Position numbers and translations under genes: made by a program. From Heteronotia binoei (taxonomy: Eukaryota), in contig NC_083237.1 in assembly GCF_032191835.1 (NCBI RefSeq), positions 17,918,001-17,982,000 of the forward strand: 64,000 bases of DNA, given 5' to 3'. Below, piece by piece: positions 6,845 through 54,595 of this stretch; the stretch's first letter is position 1; each line of letters starts with the position of its first letter. The notes below the pieces were generated by a model. It made no database searches and was not told the DNA's origin. It saw nothing but the letters and a program-made list of their open reading frames with translations.

Positions 6845-8275
6845 TTTCTTTTTCTTTTCTTTTCTTTCAAATTTAAAGTTTTATTTCAATACAACAACAT
6901 AACAACATAAGTAACAACAAATAACAACAAATACATAAATCAACATATAAACACAACAGAAAAACTACATACACACCTCACAAAACACTCTCCCATTCAC
7001 ACAAGGAGTGTTCAGGGGTTTGTCAATTCAAATTCTATTATTCCAACACAAGACCTTTACTTTTGACCCAAGTATACATAGGATCCCATGCCTCTTTACA
7101 TTTTTGTAGGTTACCATCATGCAATCTTGTGGACAATATATCTAATTCAGCAGCCTCTAATAGTTTGGATACGAATTCCTCCCTATTAGGTATCTTGGAC
7201 ATCTTCCAGTATTTTGCATATAGTATTCTTGCAATCGTAACTATATGCAGCAATAATTTTATCATTGCTTTGGGGATATTTTCTCTACAGATACTTAAAA
7301 GATATAACTCAGGTGAATGACGAATTCTTATTTTTAAATTTTTTTGAGACCATACATTAATCTGGACCCAGAATTTTTTGGCATATTCACATTGCCACCG
7401 TATGTGGAATAACAATCCCTTTTTTTCTTGCATTTCCAGCACTCATTCGAGTAATTCGGATATATATTGGCTAGTCTTTCTGGAGTGAGGTACCAATGGT
7501 ACATCATCTTATATAGGTTCTCTTTGAAAACCGCTGACTTTGTTAATTTTAAATTTTGCTTCCATACTTTTTCCCACTCCACCAAATCTATGTTAAAACC
7601 AAAATCTTTTAGCCATTTTTTCCAGCTCTCTTTCACGATCTCTCCTTGCATTTTAGTTTGAAGTAACCATTCATAAGCTTTCGAGATAATTTTCTGATTG
7701 GTTTGTATTACTAAGTCAAGGTCATTTAGCTTTTTGGGGAAACCTTTTTCTTTATCGATTTGGTATCTCGGTTTCACCTGACATTTTACCCACCAATCTA
7801 ATTTTACAATATCTTCTAATTTCAAGATGTTTTGATTATCTAATAAATTTTCATAATTGTACTGGTTTTCCCAGTCATACAAGTTTGGATGTGTGGAAGC
7901 CTCTATTGGAGACAACCATAATGGTGTATAAGAGTAGTTTTCCTTAATTTCCAACCAAACTCTAAACAATGACTTCCTTATTTCATGTCTTAAAAAAGAA
8001 CTGGTTTTTGAAGGATTATGATACCAAATGTAATTATGCCAGCCTTCTCCTAGTCCTGCTCCTTCAAGGACTAGTAATCTTTTGTTCTCCAGCGTGAGCC
8101 ATTCTTTTAGCCATGCTATACAGCAGGCCTTATAATACAAGTTCCATTCCAGTAATGCTAGTCCCCCTCTTAATTTGCTATCCTGTAATACTTTTAGCTT
8201 TATCCTGGGCTTCTTGCCCTGCCAGATGAATACCATAATCTACTCTGCTATTTTCCAGACCGCACCAGGTCTCTT
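6845..8275 (-). mobile_element. L1/Tx1-clade LINE, 5'-truncated ORF2 3' part
   Basis: ORFs 7334-8236 and 7038-7442: LRGGLALL.W.LYYKA, WYLTPERL..CWKC..HMWWQC-like zinc knuckle, AWDPMY; frameshifted. Confidence 0.85.
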
Positions 8276-20072: not shown

Positions 20073-21002
20073 TCAACTCCTAGGTCTACATTTGCTCAAC
20101 AGTCTCCACATGGCTTGTTTGATCTCTCTGTTCCTCAGAGTGTAGATCATGGGGTTCATCAAGGGGAAGACCACAGTGTGGAGAACAGCCATGACCTTGT
20201 CAAAAGGAAATTCCATGAACGGACGACAATAGATGTAGATGGCTGGTCCAAACATGATAACCACCATGATGATGTGGGTGATGCAAGTGGAGGCAGCTTT
20301 GCTCTTCCCTCGGCTCAAGCCTGTCCTCACCTTGACCAACAGGATCCCATAGGAGACAAGGAGGAGGATGAAACAGACCAGGATGGAAATGCCACTGTTC
20401 ACAAACATGAAGAGCTCCAAGGTGTAGGTGTCCATGCAAGCCAATTTGACAATCTGAATAATGTCACAGAAGAAACTGTCTACCTTGTTGGGACCACAGA
20501 ATGGAAGAGGGACAATAAAGAAGACTTGGATAATGGAGTGAAAAAATCCTAAGCACCAGGAAGCCACCACCATGACACTGCAGACTGGCCTGCTCACTAC
20601 ACTTGAGTAACGTAAGGGGTGGCAAATGGCCATGTACCGATCGATAGCCATGCTAATGAGAAGGAAGACTTCTGATCCTCCAAGAAAATGGAGGAAGAAG
20701 AGCTGGGCCATGCAGCCCTTGTAGGAGATGGTCTTGTGGCGGGAGAAGAAGTCGGCCAGCATCTTGGGAGGGGTGACGGAGCAGTAGCAGATATCCAGGA
20801 AGGCTAAGTTGGCCAAGAAGAAGTACATGGGGGAGGCCAAGCGAGGGTCACTCCGGATGGTCAAGATGATGAGGACATTTGCTGGGAGGACCAATGAGTA
20901 GAAGACAAGGAACAGGACAAAGAGGAGGAGCTGGACTCCTCTGGCCTGGGAGAGGCCCAGCAGTACAAACTCCTTCACTGCAGAATGATTCCCTTGCTGC
21001 AT
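20073..21002 (-). CDS. Olfactory receptor family 4, OR4N/OR4M-like (A3), 309 aa
   Basis: Intact OR motifs. Start set at MQQGNHS (21002) by alignment to A1/A2; the 26-aa upstream extension is intronic. Confidence 0.96.
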   Translation of the reverse strand: MQQGNHSAVKEFVLLGLSQARGVQLLLFVLFLVFYSLVLPANVLIILTIRSDPRLASPMYFFLANLAFLDICYCSVTPPKMLADFFSRHKTISYKGCMAQLFFLHFLGGSEVFLLISMAIDRYMAICHPLRYSSVVSRPVCSVMVVASWCLGFFHSIIQVFFIVPLPFCGPNKVDSFFCDIIQIVKLACMDTYTLELFMFVNSGISILVCFILLLVSYGILLVKVRTGLSRGKSKAASTCITHIIMVVIMFGPAIYIYCRPFMEFPFDKVMAVLHTVVFPLMNPMIYTLRNREIKQAMWRLLSKCRPRS

Positions 21003-28079: not shown

Positions 28080-28270
28080 AAGAAAGACTGACCTACCTGT
28101 CAGTGCTTTGATGAGAAAAGAGAGGTCCTCAGCTATCACAAATCCCATCATGAAATTGTCTCTGGCCTTTTAGGAAAGCCCCACAACAGAACAGACATGC
28201 TTGACGGCTGGGTTGGAAGAATGCCCAGCCCAGTATTCAGGGACCTTGTTTAAAATAAAAAGTTAGCAGC
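28080..28270 (-). promoter_or_regulatory. Putative promoter and non-coding exon 1 of A3
   Basis: Homologous to the A1/A2 blocks; degenerate composite at about 28234-28267; AG|GTAGGT donor at 28096-28091. Confidence 0.58.
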
Positions 28271-31590: not shown

Positions 31591-31896
31591 TAAGAAATCT
31601 CCAAAAGAGTTCAAGACAGACAGAGGCTTTACTGTTCTTCCAGGGCTAAGCTCTGCTGCAAGGCTGAGCAAGACGTCAGGCCAATTCCATTGCACAATAC
31701 ATAATCACAGCTGGCCTTTGCCATTCAGCACATGCCAAGGACTGCAATGCCCAGTATATAAGCAGAAGATCTAAACAGGAGGGCAGTACTGGAGCAAATC
31801 TTTTCCTCCTTAGCTGGAAAGCCATGCTGGACTTCATATGACCTGTTGTCCTGGCTGTGTATTTCTCATGAGGCCCTCAGCTGTGCAGTGTCCATG

Positions 31897-32943
31897 TTAG
31901 ACAACTGGCAGCTGTGATGTCAGTTGAAGGCCTGGCCCACCTGGAAATCTGTTCCTCTGGTGTCGAGAGGACATCACCCTTCCTGCTGGAATAGTAGGAA
32001 CCTGAGCAGAGACCTGCATGGAATGTCTGGCCAGCAACTTCCCCGTGGCAGATTTCATTTCTTTGCTCTTTGGAGTATAGACAGCTGGGTTTAGCAATGG
32101 GGTGATGGTGATGGAGAAGACTGAGAATGCTTTATCATTTGCGAACCTGGTGAATGGATGCAGGTAAATAAATATACAGGGCCCAAAGTACATGGTGACC
32201 ACAATGAGGTGAGAAGTGCAGGTGGAGATGGCCTTGGAATTCCCTTCAGAAAGAGCTCTGGAACGGATTGCTGAGAGAATGAGTCCATAGGAGATGAACA
32301 AAGTAATGAACCCAACCAGAGAGATGATACCACTGTTGGTCACCATCATGATCTCCAGGGGATAGACGTCAACACAGGCCAACTTGATGACCAAGGGGAT
32401 GTCACAGAAGAAGCTGTCCAGATGGTTGGGCCCACAGAAGGGGACATTAATGGTGAAGCTCAACTGCACACTGGTGTGGAGGAGCCCTCCAGCCCAGGAG
32501 GCCAGCAAAAGCCCCACACAATGGCGTTGACTCATGAGTGAGGCATAGTGGGGCGGATGGCAGATGGCCATATAGCAGTCATAGGCCATAGTCATGAGTA
32601 GGATCATCTCACTGCCTCCAAACAGGTGGAGGAAGAAGATCTGTGCCATGCAGCCTTGAAAGGAGATGGTCTGATGCTTAACTAGGAAGTCAAAGAGGGC
32701 CCAGGGGATGGCAAAGGAGGACATGAGGAGGTCCAGGAAAGCCATGTGACCCAGAAGAAAGAACATGGGTGAACTGAGAAGATGTTGATTCTGGGAAATT
32801 GCCAAGATGATGAGAAGGTTGATGAAGAGTGTGGCCACATAGAGGACAACGAAGAACACAAATAAGAGGAGGTGGGCTTCCCAAGATGGGGAGAGGCCAA
32901 GGAGGACAAACTCAGTCACTGTGGTCCTGTTTCCCCACGCCAT
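31897..32943 (-). CDS. Olfactory receptor family 4, OR4K-like (B1), 348 aa; open frame but several canonical motifs altered
   Basis: OR4K-type signatures (LSFTINVPFCGPN..DSFFCDIPLVIKLAC, EIMMVTNSG). DRY>DCY, CHPL>CHPP and YxLKN>YTPKS suggest possible loss of function. Confidence 0.88.
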   Translation of the reverse strand: MAWGNRTTVTEFVLLGLSPSWEAHLLLFVFFVVLYVATLFINLLIILAISQNQHLLSSPMFFLLGHMAFLDLLMSSFAIPWALFDFLVKHQTISFQGCMAQIFFLHLFGGSEMILLMTMAYDCYMAICHPPHYASLMSQRHCVGLLLASWAGGLLHTSVQLSFTINVPFCGPNHLDSFFCDIPLVIKLACVDVYPLEIMMVTNSGIISLVGFITLFISYGLILSAIRSRALSEGNSKAISTCTSHLIVVTMYFGPCIFIYLHPFTRFANDKAFSVFSITITPLLNPAVYTPKSKEMKSATGKLLARHSMQVSAQVPTIPAGRVMSSRHQRNRFPGGPGLQLTSQLPVV

Positions 32944-33562
32944 TCACTTCTTACCTCTCACTGAGAAAACTGGGGAAAGAAGAAAAAAATAGTAACGAAT
33001 GACACAGGCTTAGGGTCCAACCACACATGGAAGTGCTTTTGCTTTGCCCAATTTGCTATCACCATTACCAATAATGTTGGCCTTCACCTTTCACATTGTG
33101 GCATGTTTGGGAGCTGTAGGATGCCAGGGGCAGAGCCAGCTCTGCCTAGAAGGCAGGTCAGCTAGAGAGATGGATTTGCAAAAGCAAAGTGTAAATCGGC
33201 GAGCAGATGTTACTCCAGTATTTCTGCACTTCTGCCCATTCTCTGTATCCAAACACCACCCTGAACCTCAAAGCACCAACTGTAATTTTTATGTTTTATT
33301 GTTTTGTGTTATTAGATGCTTCTGTTTTATCATTGATGTTTTTATATTGCCAACTGGCCTGTGAGCCACCCTGAGCCTGCCTTTGGCGGGGAGGGCTGGA
33401 TGTAAATCTAATAACATAAATAAATAAAATAAAGCCATCTCCAGATGCTGTCAGCCTTGGAAGTAAATGCGGGCACAGATGTCTCCTCCTATGGAATTTC
33501 CTGTCCCATTCTTCTCATCTCTGAGCCACCATCCAGCACAGAATGCAACTCTTGCCCTAGAG

Positions 33563-34256
33563 CAGGGGTGGCCAATGATAGCTCTCCAGATGTTTTTTGC
33601 CTACAACTCCCATCAGCCCCAGCCAGCATGGCCAATGGCTGGGGCTGATGGGAGCTGTAGGCCATACCATACCAAACCTTTAATGGCATAATAGATTCAG
33701 ATAAAAATACACGGAATATAAAAATTTAAACATTGGAGATAAAATCAAAATGAAACCGAGCTTACAGATGCATTCAAACATGGTCAGAATTAAATTTAAG
33801 GATGTCAGCCAGAAATTTTGGCACAGCCTCACTAACCACCCCCTCAGTATCACTCAGTAGATAATAACAGGGTGGTAGAATAGACAAATCAGGGGGAAAA
33901 GAAAGCTTGCCAAATAAATCTTTGTGGAGGTTATGGTATTGAGTCAGGAGTATTCGCTCCACAGGAGCAAAGTCTGTCGGCTAAAGGGACTCGCTGATAT
34001 CTCCCTTGTAAAACTTTGGAGGGAAACGCGTTTAGTCTAGCCAACATAAATGCCCTGCGATGACTTGGAGTGGTTAAGTCTGATAGATAATTGGGCTTTT
34101 TGCCACAGAAAGCATAGAGTCCTAAGGAAGCTGGAGAGCAAATATAAGGGTCAGTTGGCTGTAATTTCATTTCCTCCAATTCCCACAGTCTCAATTTAAT
34201 ACATCTGAAGAGTTGTAGGCAAAAAACATCTGGAGAGCTACTGTTGGCCACCCCTG
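33563..34256. mobile_element. 136-bp-family MITE split by a minus-strand non-LTR retrotransposon 3' fragment (33663-34211)
   Basis: MITE halves rejoin at g(c/t)tgtaggc; insert encodes RRAFMLARLNAFPSKVLQGRYQRVPLADRLCSCG and ends attaaaggtttggtatggtatg. Confidence 0.75.
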
Positions 34257-34444
34257 CCCTATACCCATGGTAGGCAACACCCACCACCACAGTGGATTAC
34301 ACCTTCCTAGTCAAGTCCTGATAGTGAGAGTTGGTGCTGCCTAATTTGAGAGGTACATCCAAGGTCTGTGCCATTGGGTCTACTCCAGCACCCCTTCAAT
34401 AAAGTACTAAGAACTAAATGCGTATAAGTTACAACAGGACAAAT

Positions 34445-34560
34445 GCTAATGGAGGAGGAGGAGGAGCAGCAGCAGCAGAAGAAGCAAAAGCAGAAGAAGC
34501 AGCAGCAGAAGAAGAAGAAGTAAAAGCAGAAGCAGAAGCAGAAAAAGCAGCAGAAGAAGA
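34445..34560. repeat. Compound (GGA)/(GCA)/(GAA) microsatellite, expanded SINE tail
   Basis: Directly abuts a minus-strand Squam3-like SINE (about 34500-34770). Confidence 0.85.
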
Positions 34561-35355
34561 TTTGGTTTTATACCCTTTGAAGTGGCTTACAATTCCTTTC
34601 TTTCCCCACAGCAGGCACTCTGTGAGCTAGGTGGGGCTGAGAGAGCTCTGAGAGAACTTTGACTGGCCCAAGGTCACCCAACAGGGTTCATGTGGAAAAG
34701 TGGGGGAATCAAACCAACTTCTCCAGATTAGAGTCCACCGCTCTTAACCACTACACCATACTAGCTCTCAGAGAACCCCTTCCAAAGTATCTGACTGGAA
34801 ACTGCTGGAAGGCAGAAAGATAAATTAGATAGCCACAACCTAACCCAACACTGGATGTCAAGTTTCTCTTTTTATTATGATCCTTCTGAGTATAAAACAT
34901 TCACTCTCACCACAGCACTTCCTACCTGGAGCTGTATGTGGGCTGAAATGCGTATCAGAGCATCTCAAACTTCAGCTGATGTTCATCTGATATCTTATTT
35001 GTTCCAAAGTGAAGGATCCTATCTAGTGCCAATCTAGTGAGTGAATATTCAGGGTTATTAATTCGTTTATTTCCCTTAAACTACATATCAAACAATGTAA
35101 TGCTTTCATCATGTCAATATTCCACGTACCTAAATATATCATGAAGATAGTTTTGGAGGGTAGCCTTGTTGGTCTGCAAGGGAAGCAGTATATTTGAGTC
35201 CAGTAGCACATCAGAGACCCATAAGAATTTCAGGGTATGAGCATCTGAGAACCTAACAATGGAAGATTTTATTCTCAGAAGCATATACCCTGAAACACTT
35301 GTTAATTTCTAAGGTGATCCTGGACTTGAATGAAACGGTTAAATATGCCATAGTA

Positions 35356-35691
35356 CAGAGGTGGCCAAACTTGCTTAACCTAAGAGCCACATAGAATAAA
35401 CATCAGATGCTTGAGAGCCACAAGACATGAATGCCGGATGTCTGAGAGCTGCAAGATAGGAAGGAGGGAAGGCAGACAGGCAAATAGATGGGGAAACTGA
35501 GAGGTGGAAAGAAAGCAACTTTAACTTTAAATGCATTCTCCAAGCGGCCAGTTGGCTTGGCTTGGCAAAGTGAATTAAAGAGACAAATGCCTTCTCCAAG
35601 CCAGCCGACGGGGTGACAGGGGCTTTGAGAGCCACACAATATGTGTGAAAGAGCCACATGTGGCTCCTAAGCCACAGTTTGGTCACCCCTG
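35356..35691. mobile_element. Non-autonomous hAT element
   Basis: TIR cagaggtggccaa/ggtcacccctg, 8-bp TSD CCATAGTA. Confidence 0.85.
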
Positions 35692-35924
35692 CCATAGTAT
35701 TTGGGGAGAGAGGAATGGAGGAGGCTGTGTTTTGACCCAAGTCCTGGGTGGGCTGCAGCTCTGCTTATTTTATTGCATAAGTTTCATAAGTAGATTTTAT
35801 CTGGATCTCTCAAATGCAACATTTGGTAACTTAAATCTTGGCACATCCGCATATTGATTTGTAGGCATTTTCTCAACTCACTTACCATGTCTGTTGGCAA
35901 GTGTTAAAGTGCTCTTTGGGGAGG

Positions 35925-36130
35925 GATGGTGGCTCAGTGGTAGAGCAACTGCTTGGTAAGCAGAAGGTCCCAAGTTCAGTCCCTGGCATCTCCAACTAAA
36001 AAGGGTCCAGGCAAGTAGGCGTGAAAAACCTCAGCTTGAAACCCTGGAGAGCCTCTGCCAGTCTGAGTAGACAATACTGACTTTGATGCACCGAGGGTCT
36101 GATTCACCATAAGGCAGCTTCATATGTTTA
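35925..36130 (+). mobile_element. tRNA-derived SINE (second family)
   Basis: ggctcagtggtagagca head. Confidence 0.75.
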
Positions 36131-36209
36131 TATGTTCCTTCCAGTCAGAGCATACTTAGGATGTTCTGCTACCATTTCCCCAATTGCATCTCAAGATGCT
36201 GATCAAGTG

Positions 36210-36418
36210 AAGAAGAAGAAGATGATATTGGATTTATATCCCACCCTTCACTCTGAATCTCAGAGCTGCTTATAACCTCCTTTACCTTCTTCCCCCACAA
36301 CAGACACCTTGTGAGGTGGGTAAGGCTGAGAGAGCTCTCCCTGCAGTTGCCCTTTCAAGGACAACTCCTATGAAAGCTATGGCTGACCCAAGGCCATTCC
36401 AGCAGCTGCAAGTGCAGG
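36210..36418 (-). mobile_element. Squam3-like SINE, partial
   Basis: (GAA)n tail and core. Confidence 0.7.
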
Positions 36419-37204
36419 AATGGTGTGGGTGGACGAACAGCCACATAATCTAGAACAATTCCTTAAGTATCCTTGAGTATGTCCAGCAGTGACCCAACTG
36501 CTCCAAATTTCATATCCTCCCACAGGAATGCCATATGGGATAGCCTTGTGGGACGATACATCCAGGGATGGAAAGGAAAGATAGGTAGTTTGATAGAAAA
36601 CAGAGAGATCTTCTCGGGAGAGACTACAGATTGTCATACTTCTCACAATCCCTTTTAAAAAATGAGATCTGTTTGGAAATAGGAGAAATGAACTACCTCC
36701 TGTTTGCTTGTTGGCAAAATTTAAGACGCAACCGGATTCTTACCCACCTGTTAAACCTCAAAAGGAGCTCTGAGACCAGGTTCTTCTGAAGTCCACCTTA
36801 GCATCAATATTAAAGGATTGCATCTGGACACATCTTCTATATAGAAGTGTGATGTGGAGGACATATATCTGCTCAGAATGCAGGCTGAAGGGAGATGAGA
36901 ACCAATCATAGGGAAAAGACGTGGGTACAAATAACAGTTCACTGTTTTGGGAAGGGGTGGTACGCATGGGTGTTTTATGAGCATGCATAGAAAGAAATCC
37001 GTCATTTATGTAATTAGGAGGAAAGGACCAAGAAAAGCATTCCTTAGAGAGCACACAAAAGCTTACGTTCCGAATAAAACTTGGTTGGTCTTAAAGGTTC
37101 TTCCCCTCATAGTTATAGTCTCTTTGGATCTTCTTCATCAGCTGTAGAAGCTGCCATAGTAAGGGCCACAGCACACGTAGAAAAAGATACCCAACTGCCA
37201 GCTT

Positions 37205-37229
37205 TCTCAAGGGACCTCATTAAAAAGTT
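37205..37229 (-). promoter_or_regulatory. Composite homeodomain (Lhx2/Emx2-type) + O/E(Ebf) site upstream of B1, with exact 13-mer AACTTTTTAATGA
   Basis: Minus strand reads AACTTTTTAATGA-GG-TCCCTTGAGA; about 4.3 kb upstream of the B1 ATG. Confidence 0.8.
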
Positions 37230-37589
37230 AAAACTGATTCTTACCATCAATGCACACAACCTCTGGGGGCAGTAGAGAGGCAGAAAGCAAGCAAGCCTTG
37301 ATCCAGATTCCTGTCTGGTACAAACTGATCCACAGAATTAGCAAAATAAAGGTTGTCTAAAGATACTTTCAGAGATGGGCTGGCAGAAGAAGAGGGATCT
37401 GGTTGATCTGACATCTACAAGATCAGCCACTGTGCTGATCTTCATGCAAAGAGGCCATAACTGGGAGAGTAGCCAGTTCCTCAAGTCCTTCTCCCAGTTA
37501 ATCACCGCATCTCAAGTTATCTTTCCCTTCATTCATATCTACTTTAGTAAACCACTTTTGAATCTGCCATTCAACAAAATTTTTAATTG

Positions 37590-39513: not shown

Positions 39514-40560
39514 TTATGCAATTGGTAACTGTGATGCTGAATGAACACCTGGCCCACCCTTACGGCTGCTTCTCTTGCATCTCCAAGAGGTGACCACTGC
39601 TGCTGAAATGACTGGAATCTGACTGGAAACCTTCGCAGAATATCTTCCCAACAACTTCCCCATGGCAGATTTCATCTCCTTGTTTTTCAAAGCATAGATG
39701 GCTGGGTTGAGCAAGGGAGTGATAGCTGTGTAGAAGACGGACAACACTTTATCAATTGTGAAGCGGGTCTTTGGACGCAGGTAAATAAATACACAAGGCC
39801 CAAAGTACATGGTGACCACGATGAGGTGAGAAGTGCACGTGGAGATGGCCTTGGAAGTCCCTTCAGAAGGAGCTCTGGAATGGATGGCTGAGAGAATGAG
39901 TCCATAGGAGACGAACAAAGTGATGAACCCAACCACTGAGAGGATACCACTGTTGGTCACCATCATGATCTCCAGGAGATAGATGTCAGTGCAGGCCAAC
40001 TTGATGACCAAGGGGATGTCACAGAAGAAGCTGTCCAGGTGGTTGGGTCCACAGAAGGAGACATTAATGGTGAAAGCCAACTGCACACTGGTGTGGAGGA
40101 GCCCTCCAGCCCAGGAGGCCAGCACAAGCCCCACACAATGGCATTGACTCATGAGTGAGGCATAGTGGAGTGGATGGCAGATGGCCACATAGCGGTCGTA
40201 GGCCATAGCCATGAGAAGAAACATCTCAGTGCCTCCAAACAGATGGAGGAGGAAGATCTGGGCCATGCAGCCTTGGAAGGAGATGGTCTGACGTTGGGTG
40301 AGGAAGTCAAAGAGGGCTCTGGGTGTGGCGAAGGAGGACAGGAAGAGGTCCAGGAAGGCCAAGTGACCCAGCAAAATGAACATGGGTGAACGGAGAAGAT
40401 GGCGGTCCTGGGAAATGGCCAGTAAAATAAGAAGGTTGCTAAAGAGGGTGGCTGTGTAGAGGAAAAGGAAGAGCATAAATAAGAGGAGACGGGCTTCCCA
40501 GGATGAGGAGAATCCAAGGAGGACAAACTCAGTCACCACAGTCTTGTTTCCCCACGCCAT
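39514..40560 (-). CDS. Olfactory receptor family 4, OR4K-like (B2), 348 aa
   Basis: Intact MAYDRYVAICHPLHY, KAISTC.SH, PLLNPAIY. Start set at MAWGNKT (40560) by alignment to B1. Confidence 0.95.
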   Translation of the reverse strand: MAWGNKTVVTEFVLLGFSSSWEARLLLFMLFLFLYTATLFSNLLILLAISQDRHLLRSPMFILLGHLAFLDLFLSSFATPRALFDFLTQRQTISFQGCMAQIFLLHLFGGTEMFLLMAMAYDRYVAICHPLHYASLMSQCHCVGLVLASWAGGLLHTSVQLAFTINVSFCGPNHLDSFFCDIPLVIKLACTDIYLLEIMMVTNSGILSVVGFITLFVSYGLILSAIHSRAPSEGTSKAISTCTSHLIVVTMYFGPCVFIYLRPKTRFTIDKVLSVFYTAITPLLNPAIYALKNKEMKSAMGKLLGRYSAKVSSQIPVISAAVVTSWRCKRSSRKGGPGVHSASQLPIA

Positions 40561-44414: not shown

Positions 44415-45777
44415 CTTTCCTTTCCCCTACCTCTGCTGTTTTGGCAATGGAGGGGGGTGGGTAAACTCATTAATGGCCTTGGTAGGATCCAGACTAGCTT
44501 GCCAACTTCCAGTAATTTCCCCCTTCTTGCTGCCTACCCGCCCTCTACTCATATGATTCCTCAGGGTCTTGTATCCCTGAGGAGCAGCATTTTGCAGAGA
44601 CCAGTGGGCTGCAGCTGGAGGAGAGAGGCAGGTGAAAGACAACTAATTGGGCCATAATGCAAACAGCTGGAACTGATGATATCTCAATCGGCCAGATAGA
44701 GGGTGGAATACTGCAACAAGTGAGGCCAGACTCAGAGTACTATAGGCGTCTGCTGCCTCACTCAAAAGCCTGGGGGAACGTTGCTATCTGTGGCCACAAG
44801 ATGGCCATGTATGGATGCACTGTCTCAATGAAGCGTACGCACAGAGAACCAAGCATCCAGGCCTAGACACTCAGAGTTGATTCTGATTGAATCCACCAGC
44901 AGAAAACTCCTGTTCAAAAGTGCTCTTGTAAAGTCAGGAGCAACTCTGGGGTGAAACCACTTTCAGTGGCAATTCAAGAAAACGAGTGTAAATGACTTAA
45001 GAAAAAGCAAAGCAATGAAACACCCTTGGTTCCATGTCCATGACCCTAACAGGTCTTCTCGGATTTGCTGCTACCATTTGAATTTTACTGTTTTAATGTT
45101 TTTCAGGTTGTCAGGTCTCTGTTGGAAAATATCTGGAGACTTTGGGGGTGGAGCTAGGAGGGGAAAGGGAGGGGCCTTGGCATGGTGCAATGCCAGAGAG
45201 TCCACCCTTCAAAGCATCCACGTCCTCCAGGGGAGCTGATCTCTGCCAGCTGGAGATCAGTTATATAAGCGGGGGATCTCCAGGCCACACCTGGAGGCTG
45301 GCAACCCTAATTACTGACTTTGTTTGTTGTGATCTACCCTGAGCTTGCTTTGGGGAGGGCAGAATAGAAATCCAAAAAAATGAATAAATAAATCTCCAGA
45401 AAACAATTGTGTGATTTGGGCCTTTCCACAATGGATTTTACAGGCATTTTACTCCTCTCTTATTCATCTGGGGGATTGTTCCACACACATGCCTATGAAA
45501 TACTCTTCCATTCCTAAAAGTTAGAGTTTCTCTAATCTGTGCTCTGGAAGCTGTAGGGCTGCCAACCTCCAGATAGGACCTGGAGGTCTCTCAAAATTTC
45601 AAGACTATAGAAATATGTTCCCCTGGAGAAAAATGGTTGATATGGAGTGGGGACATTATGGCATTTTACCCTACTGAGGTCCCTCCCACTCCCCAGGCTG
45701 CTCCCACAAATCTCTAGGAATTTTCCACCCTTGAGTTGGCATCTCTAAGACAAGCAGAGGTATCCTTCCCTCATCTT

Positions 45778-45802
45778 CCTCAAGGGACCTCATTAAAAAC
45801 AT
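45778..45802 (-). promoter_or_regulatory. Composite homeodomain + O/E site upstream of B2
   Basis: Minus strand reads ATGTTTTTAATGA-GG-TCCCTTGAGG; same spacing and homologous flank as 37205-37310; about 5.2 kb upstream of the B2 ATG. Confidence 0.75.
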
Positions 45803-46549
45803 CACACTTGGCATCCCAAGCCACCACTGCCGACGACCTCTGGGGCAAACAGGAGACAGAGAGATGGAAGGCCTTGATCTGGACCCAAATCCAGAAGGAA
45901 ACAAGCCCCAGACAAAGCAAGAGAGATGCTGCTGCAAGCCCCTCCAGGGAGAAGGGCTTTGGGAGTCCACGTGAAATGGAGACCTGCCAATCCAAAAGGA
46001 CGTATCAGAACCACAGCTGAGTCCTTCAATCAGCTGTGCCAGTCAGCAGCACCACTGCTTCAAAATCCCTTCCTTTTTTTCATTTCTAGTTTGCAAATCC
46101 AAATCAGCCACAGGGGGAATCTGTCACAGAGAGACCAAAGTTGTAAAACAATAAATACAACTCTTGCATGGCAGATGCTTAATAGAAATGGCACAGAGTC
46201 AATTACAAGTTCCCTGCTCTTTTCTCACTGGGCACATTCACCTTATGAACTCTTCTTTGCCTGATAGATGATGCCAAAGGTTGTTTGGAGGATTATCCTG
46301 AACCGACATCTAAGGTTTCTATTTGCAAGGAACTTCAGGGTGTCTCATCATCACTTTCCTTGCATCCAAAACTGATAAACATGGTCACTTATTTGCACAT
46401 TTTAGCTTGCATCACCAACCCAAAAGCACCTCAAGAAATCATATCTTACATTCAGAATCACATCAGAATATGGGAGACATACTGATTAGGCATATAGTTT
46501 CTCTGTATTAGAGTTCATTTTTCATGTGTACTTCCAGCTGGATTACTGA

Positions 46550-50497: not shown

Positions 50498-51433
50498 TCA
50501 CTTGTCCCTTCCAACTTTATTTTTCTTTAGCAGTCTGAACATAGCAGCTTTGATCTCCTTGTTCCTCAAGGTGTAGATCATGGGGTTCATCAAAGGAAAG
50601 ACCACAGTGTGGAAAAAGGCCACCACCTTGTCCAATGGGAAGTCTTGGAAAGGGCGGCAATAGATATAGATGGCCGGGCCAAACATAATGAAGACGATGA
50701 TGATGTGGGTGATGCACGTGGATGCGGCTTTGTTCTTCCCTTGGACCGAACCTGTCCTCACTTTGACCAGCAAGGCCCCGTAGAAGATGAGGAGAATGAT
50801 AAAGCATGTGGCGGTGACCAGGCCACTATTGATAAACATGGCAAACTCCAAGGTGTAGGTGTTGGTGCACGCCAACTTGATGATCTGGGTGATGTCACAG
50901 AAGAAGTTGTCCAGTTCGTTTGGACCGCAGAAAGGGAGTGGGATGATGAGAATCATTTGGATCATAGAGTGCATGAAGCCTTCAGCCCATGAGCCAATCA
51001 CTAGCACCCAGCAAACGACTCTGGTCATTGTCGTGGCATAATGCAGTGGGTGGCAAATGGCTACATATCGGTCAACCGCCATGGCAACAAGCAAGCAAAT
51101 CTCAGCTGCACCTAGGAAGTGGATGAAAAAAATTTGCGCCAAGCAGCCTTGATAGGAGATGGTTTTCTGGCGAGTGAAGAGGTTGGCCATCATCTTTGGA
51201 GGGGTGACAATGCTATAGCAGATGTCCATAAAGGCCAGGCTGGACAAGAAGAAAAACATGGGGGACCCTAGGCGGAGGTCACTCCGAATTGTCACAATGA
51301 TAAGGATATTCCCTGGTAGAATGATGACATAGAAGAGTAATAAGAGGGCACAGAGGAACAACTGTAATTCCCAGTTCTTTGCTAATCCTTGGAGAACAAA
51401 CTCTGTCACCACTGTGCGATTCCCACGTTCCAT
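50498..51433 (-). CDS. Olfactory receptor family 4, OR4N/OR4M-like (C1), 311 aa
   Basis: MERGNRT start, [40 protein letters not shown]. Confidence 0.96.
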   Translation of the reverse strand: MERGNRTVVTEFVLQGLAKNWELQLFLCALLLLFYVIILPGNILIIVTIRSDLRLGSPMFFFLSSLAFMDICYSIVTPPKMMANLFTRQKTISYQGCLAQIFFIHFLGAAEICLLVAMAVDRYVAICHPLHYATTMTRVVCWVLVIGSWAEGFMHSMIQMILIIPLPFCGPNELDNFFCDITQIIKLACTNTYTLEFAMFINSGLVTATCFIILLIFYGALLVKVRTGSVQGKNKAASTCITHIIIVFIMFGPAIYIYCRPFQDFPLDKVVAFFHTVVFPLMNPMIYTLRNKEIKAAMFRLLKKNKVGRDK

Positions 51434-51985: not shown

Positions 51986-52192
51986 TGTGGCAAGTGAAAT
52001 GATCTTTCTCCCCAGATTTTTGGAGTTCTGAATTACCTGCTCCAATTTCCAAAACGGGAACCTGTGCCCAACACTGGCTCTTAATTTTTCGTTGCACCCA
52101 GCTTTTCTGGTATGGGAGATGATGGCAGGATGAGTGGTCTCTGGTTCATCTAGGAGGCAAGATGAAGACATAGGTCAGCTGGCTGGTTTTCA

Positions 52193-52421
52193 TTTATTTT
52201 TCTTTAGCAGTCTGAACATAGCAGCTTTGATCTCCTTGTTCCTCAAGGTGTAGATCATGGGGTTCATCAAAGGAAAGACCACAGTGTGGAAAAAGGCCAC
52301 CACCTTGTCCAATGGGAAATCTTGGAAAGGGCGGCAATAGATATAGATGGCCGGACCAAACACAATGATGATGTGTGTGATGCATGTGGATGCGGCTTTG
52401 TTCTTCCCTTGGACTGAACCT
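52193..52421 (-). pseudogene. Partial duplicate of the C1 3' end (TM6-TM7-C-terminus) with a 9-nt in-frame deletion
   Basis: Aligns to 50516-50753 with only a few substitutions. In the OR frame it reads ..[33 protein letters not shown]-stop; no 5' part. Confidence 0.93.
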
Positions 52422-52469
52422 TTGTTCTATCACTTCAGACCAACATGGATGCCCACCTGGATCACTCTC

Positions 52470-54570: not shown

Positions 54571-54595
54571 TCCCCAAGGACCTTATTAAAAAGTT
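54571..54595 (-). promoter_or_regulatory. Composite homeodomain + O/E site upstream of C1
   Basis: Minus strand reads AACTTTTTAATAA-GG-TCCTTGGGGA; same 2-nt spacer; about 3.1 kb upstream of the C1 ATG; GTAAGT donor at 54281-54276. Confidence 0.72.

Follow-up and report, generated by a model that had tools for sequence, protein, structure and literature searches.

The site at positions 37205-37229 on the minus strand of the DNA analysed here (the window: 64,000 nucleotides of the gecko Heteronotia binoei, C15:17918001-17982000) is probably the 25-bp core of a promoter or promoter-proximal cassette of about 240 bp, which is present per OR gene and would be bound by Lhx2-type and Ebf factors. 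The element as a whole appears very probably to be a working on-switch of OR4K/OR4N-like genes. On its minus strand the window carries intact OR genes arranged in tandem, and this strand reads AACTTTTTAATGA-GG-TCCCTTGAGA from 37229 to 37205. The features at and around the site are the following:

37217-37229, minus strand: extended homeodomain (HD) site AACTTTTTAATGA, TAAT core at 37219-37222; identical to the 13-mer of mouse H, P and P3
37205-37214, minus strand: O/E (Ebf)-like site TCCCTTGAGA, 4 nt after TAAT; register as in the mouse Sfaktiria composite
37094-37331, minus strand: A-type conserved non-coding element, copy s1, about 240 bp, delimited with nhmmer, alignment and BLAST to the skink; the composite is its most conserved core
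31897-32943, minus strand: OR4K-like coding exon B1, 348 aa; the motif lies upstream of this gene
32961-32990, minus strand: polypyrimidine tract and AG (32970-32971, 32961-32962), 18-28 nt upstream of the ATG; resembles a 3' splice acceptor
37043-37098, no strand assigned: 56-bp high-copy repeat; an insertion in H. binoei, downstream of the element and outside the conserved cassette

A preliminary description of the site, made from the letters of the window, had reported an exact mouse-type 13-mer fused to an O/E site on the minus strand. The sequence does read so, with one mismatch between the O/E part, TCCCTTGAGA, and the Ebf consensus, which is TCCCNNGGGA. The distance given there, about 4.3 kb upstream of the B1 start codon, was measured as 4,286 bp (ATG at 32943, OR4K-like gene 31897-32943 on the minus strand), and the gene falls into the OR4K clade of our protein tree, in agreement with its description as OR4K-like. 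The literature likewise agrees that the 13-mer is common to the mouse H and P elements and the P3 promoter and that its multimers raise OR choice. Also the statement that the site lies in non-repeat DNA was borne out: a 651-bp query around it matched itself only, barring the 56-bp repeat, which lies about 120 bp downstream.

The 56-bp unit was found in at least 58 places on many chromosomes at 88-98% identity, with some copies in short tandem or inverted arrays (e.g. C1:6973606-6973891), and it falls where the Gekko ortholog has no counterpart stretch. The presumed intron of the OR4K-like gene (33300-36470) is dense in interspersed repeats that unrelated public runs contain abundantly in their contigs, with loose ends resembling a tRNA-derived SINE. 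On the stretch 31800-37400, the contigs from public runs (three metatranscriptomic RNA, one probably DNA) covered only the interspersed repeats at 33.3-36.5 kb and the 56-bp repeat.

Paralogous copies of the cassette were searched for in 264 kb assembled around the window, with a matrix threshold of 20 bits. Matches above the threshold were obtained at 37222, 45795, 54588, 64916, 66098 and 86880, all of them on the gene strand and 3.2-6.1 kb upstream of the next OR start codon, and at 28251 and -3480 there were variant copies whose TAAT is replaced by TAAC or AAAC. Overall there was roughly one set of O/E and HD sites per gene in this cluster. When an O/E site with a nearby TAAT was sought upstream of the 16 ORs of the 264 kb, only the known cassettes and one repeat-borne site were recovered. 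The copies inside the window and the genes paired with them are:

45778-45802, minus strand: paralogous composite s2, ATGTTTTTAATGAGGTCCCTTGAGG; its distance to the downstream ATG (OR gene at 39514-40560) is 5.2 kb
39514-40560, minus strand: second OR4K-like gene, 348 aa, 76% identical to B1, paired with copy s2
54571-54595, minus strand: paralogous composite s3, B-type, AACTTTTTAATAAGGTCCTTGGGGA; its distance to the downstream ATG (OR4N-like gene at 50498-51433) is 3.2 kb
50498-51433, minus strand: OR4N/4M-like gene, 311 aa, paired with copy s3
28230-28264, minus strand: C-type variant cassette AACTTTTTATTTTAAACAAGGTCCCTGAATACTGG, TAAT replaced, 7.2 kb upstream of the OR gene at 20073-21002

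The element around s2 spans about 45670-45906, and the ortholog of s3 was identified in Paroedura (L031:677). The cassette types track the gene subfamilies, type A being found with the two OR4K-like genes, type B with OR4N/4M-like genes and type C with a second OR4N/4M-like group. Genes of types A and B share 42-48% protein identity; the cores of their cassettes are about 80% identical and the flanks unalignable. The C-type variant, TTTTTAACAAGGTCCCTGA(A/G)TGCTGG with the core TAAC or AAAC, was detected also in Gekko, Paroedura, Tiliqua, Thamnophis and Lacerta (L029:12935, L031:11872, L032:13441 and 20607, L033:17524, L035:16685), and in several squamates it is positioned 2-7 kb upstream of the OR4N/4M-like gene that comes next after the OR4K-like gene.

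Some copies depart from the pairing of cassette and gene. The A-type copy at C15:17984082-17984102 of the H. binoei genome (G000; about 66098 relative to the window) has no A-type OR gene downstream, and in the second Eublepharis copy (L030:7345-7472) the TAAT has decayed (AAAAAAATGATGCCCCTTGAGG). This orphan copy and the TAAT-less one are possibly natural 'dead' copies, and some cassette copies may thus be ones that need not be active. The B-type cassette at 54588 is separated from its gene by an OR C-terminal pseudogene fragment (52178-52426, minus strand; about 85 aa, 56% identical to a neighbouring OR), and in Paroedura, which is without this fragment, the cassette and the ATG are only 1.3 kb apart. 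As to the proteins, squamate OR4K-like genes have in common an N-terminal extension of about 30 aa starting with MAWG (32854-32943 on the minus strand of the window); the OR4K-like proteins of H. binoei, Euleptes and Thamnophis have 348 aa, the typical OR having about 310. A 300-aa ORF with no Pfam match lies within the OR array at 7334-8236 on the minus strand, and the flanking cluster holds several ORFs of 800-1,060 aa (105970-108426, 121876-124536 and 134570-137755 relative to the window), which may be retroelements.

Orthologous loci were taken as the 10-kb flanks of the closest homologs in six species. The preliminary description had named a lack of conservation in orthologous lizard loci as an outcome that would speak against the site, and the module was found conserved in all six squamates examined, on the gene strand and 1.3-7.6 kb upstream of the ATG:

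Gekko japonicus, L029:2601: exact 13-mer and GGTCCCTCAAGA
Eublepharis, L030:4223: TTTTTAATGAAGTCCCTTGAGG
Paroedura, L031:677 and 4891: two copies
Tiliqua (skink), L032:5826: TTTTTAATGAGGTCTCTTGAGAA
Thamnophis (snake), L033:5444: TTTTAATAAGATCCCTTGAGAA
Rhineura (amphisbaenian), L034:2391: AACTTCTTAATGAGCTCCTTAAGGG

The pair of H. binoei and Gekko is by itself uninformative, since most of their intergenic DNA still aligns (76-89%). Between gecko and skink, the motif block was the sole alignable non-coding DNA in the 6.6-kb intergenic region, besides about 36 nt before the ATG. An nhmmer profile built from gecko copies only (-110 to +130) gave a single significant match per 21-kb locus in Rhineura (E 6.5e-22), Tiliqua (3.2e-21) and Thamnophis (8.8e-6), from which it follows that a conserved non-coding element of about 240 bp is common to geckos and other main squamate lineages. 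The split of geckos from these lineages is roughly 190-200 My old. Stops are present in all frames of the element, ruling out a coding exon, and a known RNA was ruled out on the basis that Rfam gave no match for it.

Within the alignment of the element, the composite was the best-conserved 21-column window, with a majority identity of 0.91, and 11 of the 31 invariant columns fall within 25 columns at the composite (Fisher p 1e-5). The strongest constraint was seen in TTTTTAAT-A--TC--T---G, which corresponds to the HD core and the O/E half-sites. Conservation of the element reaches from about -105 to +120, well past the composite, and among its conserved blocks some, such as CCCCAGAGGT and GTGTCTCTGCC, matched none of the motifs tested. 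The majority consensus of 13 squamate copies is AACTTTTTAATGA exactly. The exact 13-mer itself was found in only two of these copies (the site at 37205-37229 and its Gekko ortholog), the others differing from it at 1-5 positions, mainly in the 5' AAC and in TAATGA versus TAATAA. The exact match to the mouse 13-mer, as read from these alignments, reflects the consensus of the cassette family. Judged by the same alignments, the composite is under strong purifying selection across Squamata, which is the expectation for a promoter or enhancer core.

The rarity of the motif was examined both in the window and in the whole genome. In the window the exact 13-mer occurs once (37217-37229, minus strand) and there is a single copy with one mismatch (54583-54595, minus strand); these two matches with at most one mismatch compare with 0.16 expected, and two were reached in 1 of 100 shuffles. 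TCCCNNGRGA was not enriched in the window (2 matches versus 5.7 expected). In the genome of 2.63 Gb the 13-mer occurred 281 times versus 287 times for the reversed control, which gives an expectation of about 0.007 per 64-kb window. This is about 3.4 times the estimate of about 0.002 in the preliminary description, which was made for uniform base composition, and the 13-mer is still rare in such a window. None of the first 100 genomic matches listed lay inside the listed OR clusters. With these frequencies and no OR cluster among those 100 matches, the 13-mer is neither over-represented nor OR-associated genome-wide. The degenerate 21-mer TTTTTAATRAGGTCCYTKGRG gave strict matches at three places only in the 2.63 Gb, all within the window. 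With up to two mismatches it gave 63 matches versus 58 in the control, including two extra copies just past the end of the window, and in the other OR clusters listed only one such match was found (C15:20553545), not above chance. As matches with up to two mismatches elsewhere are at the level of chance, the cassette is specific to the OR4K/4N array and not a general OR-cluster motif.

These counts bear on the simplest alternative, in which the site is a chance k-mer in neutral DNA or a functionless passenger of a recent tandem duplication or of a transposable element. This reading would fit with a 13-mer that is as frequent genome-wide as its reversed control, and with the ready alignment of H. 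binoei and Gekko intergenic DNA, mostly at 76-89%, which makes the Gekko match alone non-probative. It does not explain why, the stretch at the ATG apart, this is the only non-coding block kept between gecko and skink, why a profile made of gecko copies finds the element in an amphisbaenian and a skink at E values around 1e-21, or why the core is kept between subfamilies with such low protein identity. The element is moreover single-copy per locus and does not occur elsewhere in the genome. Taken together, the conservation between gecko and skink, the profile matches and the conservation statistics effectively refute the chance or passenger reading, which we regard as hardly credible. The site is therefore non-random on account of its conservation in paralogous and orthologous loci, and not on account of the rarity of the 13-mer.

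The composite consists of an extended homeodomain site that is rich in T (Lhx2/Emx2 type, TAATGA) and of an Ebf (O/E) site that begins 4 nt after the TAAT. On the promoter reading, Lhx2-type and Ebf factors would co-occupy it in olfactory sensory neurons. The bound factors would open the chromatin and lead to transcription of the downstream OR gene, or set its choice probability. Transcripts would begin with a non-coding first exon located a short distance past the cassette, and this exon would be spliced over an intron of about 1-7 kb to the acceptor just before the ATG. The putative acceptor is conserved in the H. binoei paralogs and in five other squamates, and a conserved polypyrimidine-AG acceptor in front of the ATG implies that the coding exon is preceded by a non-coding one. 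Downstream of the composite, at a distance of about 100 bp, a TATA-like ACTATAAC is partly conserved. No consistently placed splice donor was detected with an approximate matrix within 330 bp downstream of the motif.

Instead of a promoter, the element could be an intergenic enhancer of the Greek-Island kind, i.e. an accessible island in OR heterochromatin that acts from a distance on one or several ORs, possibly in hubs; the true promoters would then be at other places in the 1-7 kb that separate the cassette from the ATG. By the rules known from mouse, the composite argues for an enhancer rather than a promoter, as the composite with stereotyped spacing of the 1-bp type is the hallmark of mouse OR enhancers and is reported to be depleted from promoters, and the gecko site fits the published composite pattern in register. 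A conserved donor or a clear TATA/TSS signature adjoining the site was likewise not detected, and the distance between cassette and ATG varies widely, from 1.3 to 7.6 kb; the latter is explainable by a variable length of the intron. What favours the promoter reading is that the copies number roughly one to a gene and share its strand in every case, whereas mouse has only 63 islands for more than 1,000 genes. In addition, the copies have co-diverged with the gene subfamilies into types A, B and C, the conserved acceptor implies an intron upstream of the coding exon, a TATA-like sequence is partly conserved, and the 13-mer is found also in the mouse P3 promoter. On this evidence we consider a distant enhancer possible, if rather unlikely. 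The element could also have another function altogether (different factors, an insulator, a silencer or nucleation of OR heterochromatin), its resemblance to HD and O/E sites being incidental. Such a function would account for the conserved sequence from about -105 to +120, with blocks that lack a motif match, and for the TAAC or AAAC that C-type copies have instead of TAAT. The constraint, however, peaks exactly on the HD core and the O/E half-sites, and a mouse OR choice element that has been validated functionally is identical to the consensus of the 13 copies, so that an unrelated function appears improbable.

The preliminary description had further proposed that the H/P-type motif predates the split of mammals and reptiles. 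Searches with the gecko-trained matrix and profiles over about 6-10 kb upstream of related OR4K/4N genes gave no significant homolog in alligator, painted turtle, cassowary, Tasmanian devil or rabbit, and the proposal found no support in the loci of these five non-squamate species. The scan across amniotes that had been suggested thus turned out positive for squamate OR loci, which carry the module, and gave nothing significant in the bird, turtle and mammal loci examined. The idea that the site acts as a promoter or enhancer core agrees with its position, its Lhx2/Ebf register and the constraint in squamates; ancient homology to the H/P type would be a possibility argued indirectly from the gene tree.

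An origin deeper than Squamata can still be considered from the genes. In the protein tree the gecko A-type genes belong to an OR4K clade that is sister to mammalian OR4K. The B- and C-type genes belong to an OR4N/4M clade together with turtle, bird, alligator and tuatara genes, with mammalian OR4N2 in the enclosing clade. On this tree the split between OR4K and OR4N/4M genes predates amniotes, and common descent of the A and B/C cassettes would make the module older than amniotes as well. The identity of the consensus with the mouse 13-mer and the presence of the cassette at both the OR4K and the OR4N/4M types indirectly keep an ancient origin alive. Promoter conversion, or convergence on the same transcription-factor code, would explain both arguments equally well. 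In the most far-reaching form, the fused HD and Ebf module would be an ancestral promoter grammar of amniote OR4K/4N/4M genes that existed before their duplication, which squamates have kept per gene for at least the duration of their radiation and which in mammals persists mainly in a handful of enhancers (H, P, Sfaktiria, J) and the occasional promoter (P3). A module present before the duplication into OR4K and OR4N/4M would also have been present before the mammal-sauropsid split. We consider this scenario unlikely; if true, the Greek-Island enhancers would have descended from promoter cassettes of individual genes, or be functional relics of them. Two mutually similar sites in Alligator sinensis (L036:8498-8525, plus strand, and L036:18360-18395, minus strand) read ACTT(T/G)TTAATAA(YY)CCCTCTG...CTGCACC(A/T)GGCC. 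Both have the orientation of the OR genes downstream, at distances of 1.5 and 3.9 kb; L036:8510 carries AACTTTTTAATAA, the other being L036:18381. The sites resemble B-type copies, with GCACC(A/T)G at the same offset, and are suggestive, though they were below significance in the profile tests.

The choice of one OR per neuron has so far been worked out almost entirely in mouse, and no description of squamate OR cis-elements was found in the literature searched. The cassette is a concrete, sequence-defined candidate from a reptile, which combines the layout of the Lhx2/Ebf composite with the extended HD sequence that raises choice probability in mouse, and which is conserved in all major squamate lineages sampled. 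If the cassette is active, amniotes would have the cis-code of OR choice in common. The composite, thought to be specific for enhancers in mouse, could then also serve in promoter-like positions, and this would bear on the evolution of enhancer hubs. The A, B and C types and the decayed copies provide a natural set of variants for comparison.

Several mouse OR elements can be compared with the gecko site. A 21-mer, ACATAACTTTTTAATGAGTCT, which contains the 13-mer, has been used in 5x and 9x arrays as a mouse OR 'gene choice enhancer'. The 13-mer of mouse H, P and P3 is matched at 13 of 13 positions at 37217-37229 in the gecko, as it is by the consensus of the 13 squamate copies, and the gecko site also has in common with the 21-mer the continuation TAATGAG. 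After this the mouse 21-mer has TCT, whereas the gecko has GTCCCTTGAGA, a full O/E site. The setting of the gecko 13-mer is like that in mouse, namely in an OR cluster and upstream of an OR gene. The Greek-Island Lhx2/Ebf composite is exemplified by the Sfaktiria EMSA probe AACTTTTTAATTGATCTCCAAGGA (Monahan et al. 2017, PMC5608512). The gecko site has the same register, with CC at +10/+11 and G at +14 counted from the first T of TAAT, and the AACTTTTTAAT flank is identical. In the TAAT register TAATGAGGTCCCTTGAG fits the degenerate composite pattern (PMC11643329), as do 8 of the 13 squamate copies, the remaining five failing at one position each (read by eye). The pattern is permissive (164 matches in the window versus about 100 in shuffles), so this fit is a check of register and not a test of significance.

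Mouse composites are reported to be concentrated in intergenic enhancers, with depletion from OR promoters (PMC11643329; PMC12547500), and there are 63 Greek Islands for more than 1,000 OR genes. Greek Islands are intergenic, few per cluster and distinct from promoters; the gecko cassettes are, in contrast, about one per gene, on the gene strand and co-diverging with the subfamilies. Mouse thus has about 63 intergenic enhancers where the gecko has roughly one copy per gene in a promoter-like position, and the gecko element is a sequence of about 240 bp that has been conserved for the whole squamate radiation. Mammalian OR promoters have O/E and HD sites, and sometimes a TATA, within a few hundred bp of the TSS of a non-coding first exon (PMC3247239, PMC12547500). 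The gecko likewise has O/E and HD sites per gene, a putative intron before the coding exon and the partly conserved TATA-like ACTATAAC, but differs in that HD and O/E are fused as a composite of the enhancer type. The core of the mouse J element, a class I OR enhancer conserved from platypus to human, consists of HD1 AAACTTTTAATGA and the composite HD2. Like the gecko cassette, it combines conservation over more than 150 My with an extended HD site of the AACTTTT-AATGA type and a composite motif. As one long-range enhancer, J serves about 75 class I genes across 3 Mb, whereas the gecko has cassette copies for individual genes of an OR4 (class II) cluster.
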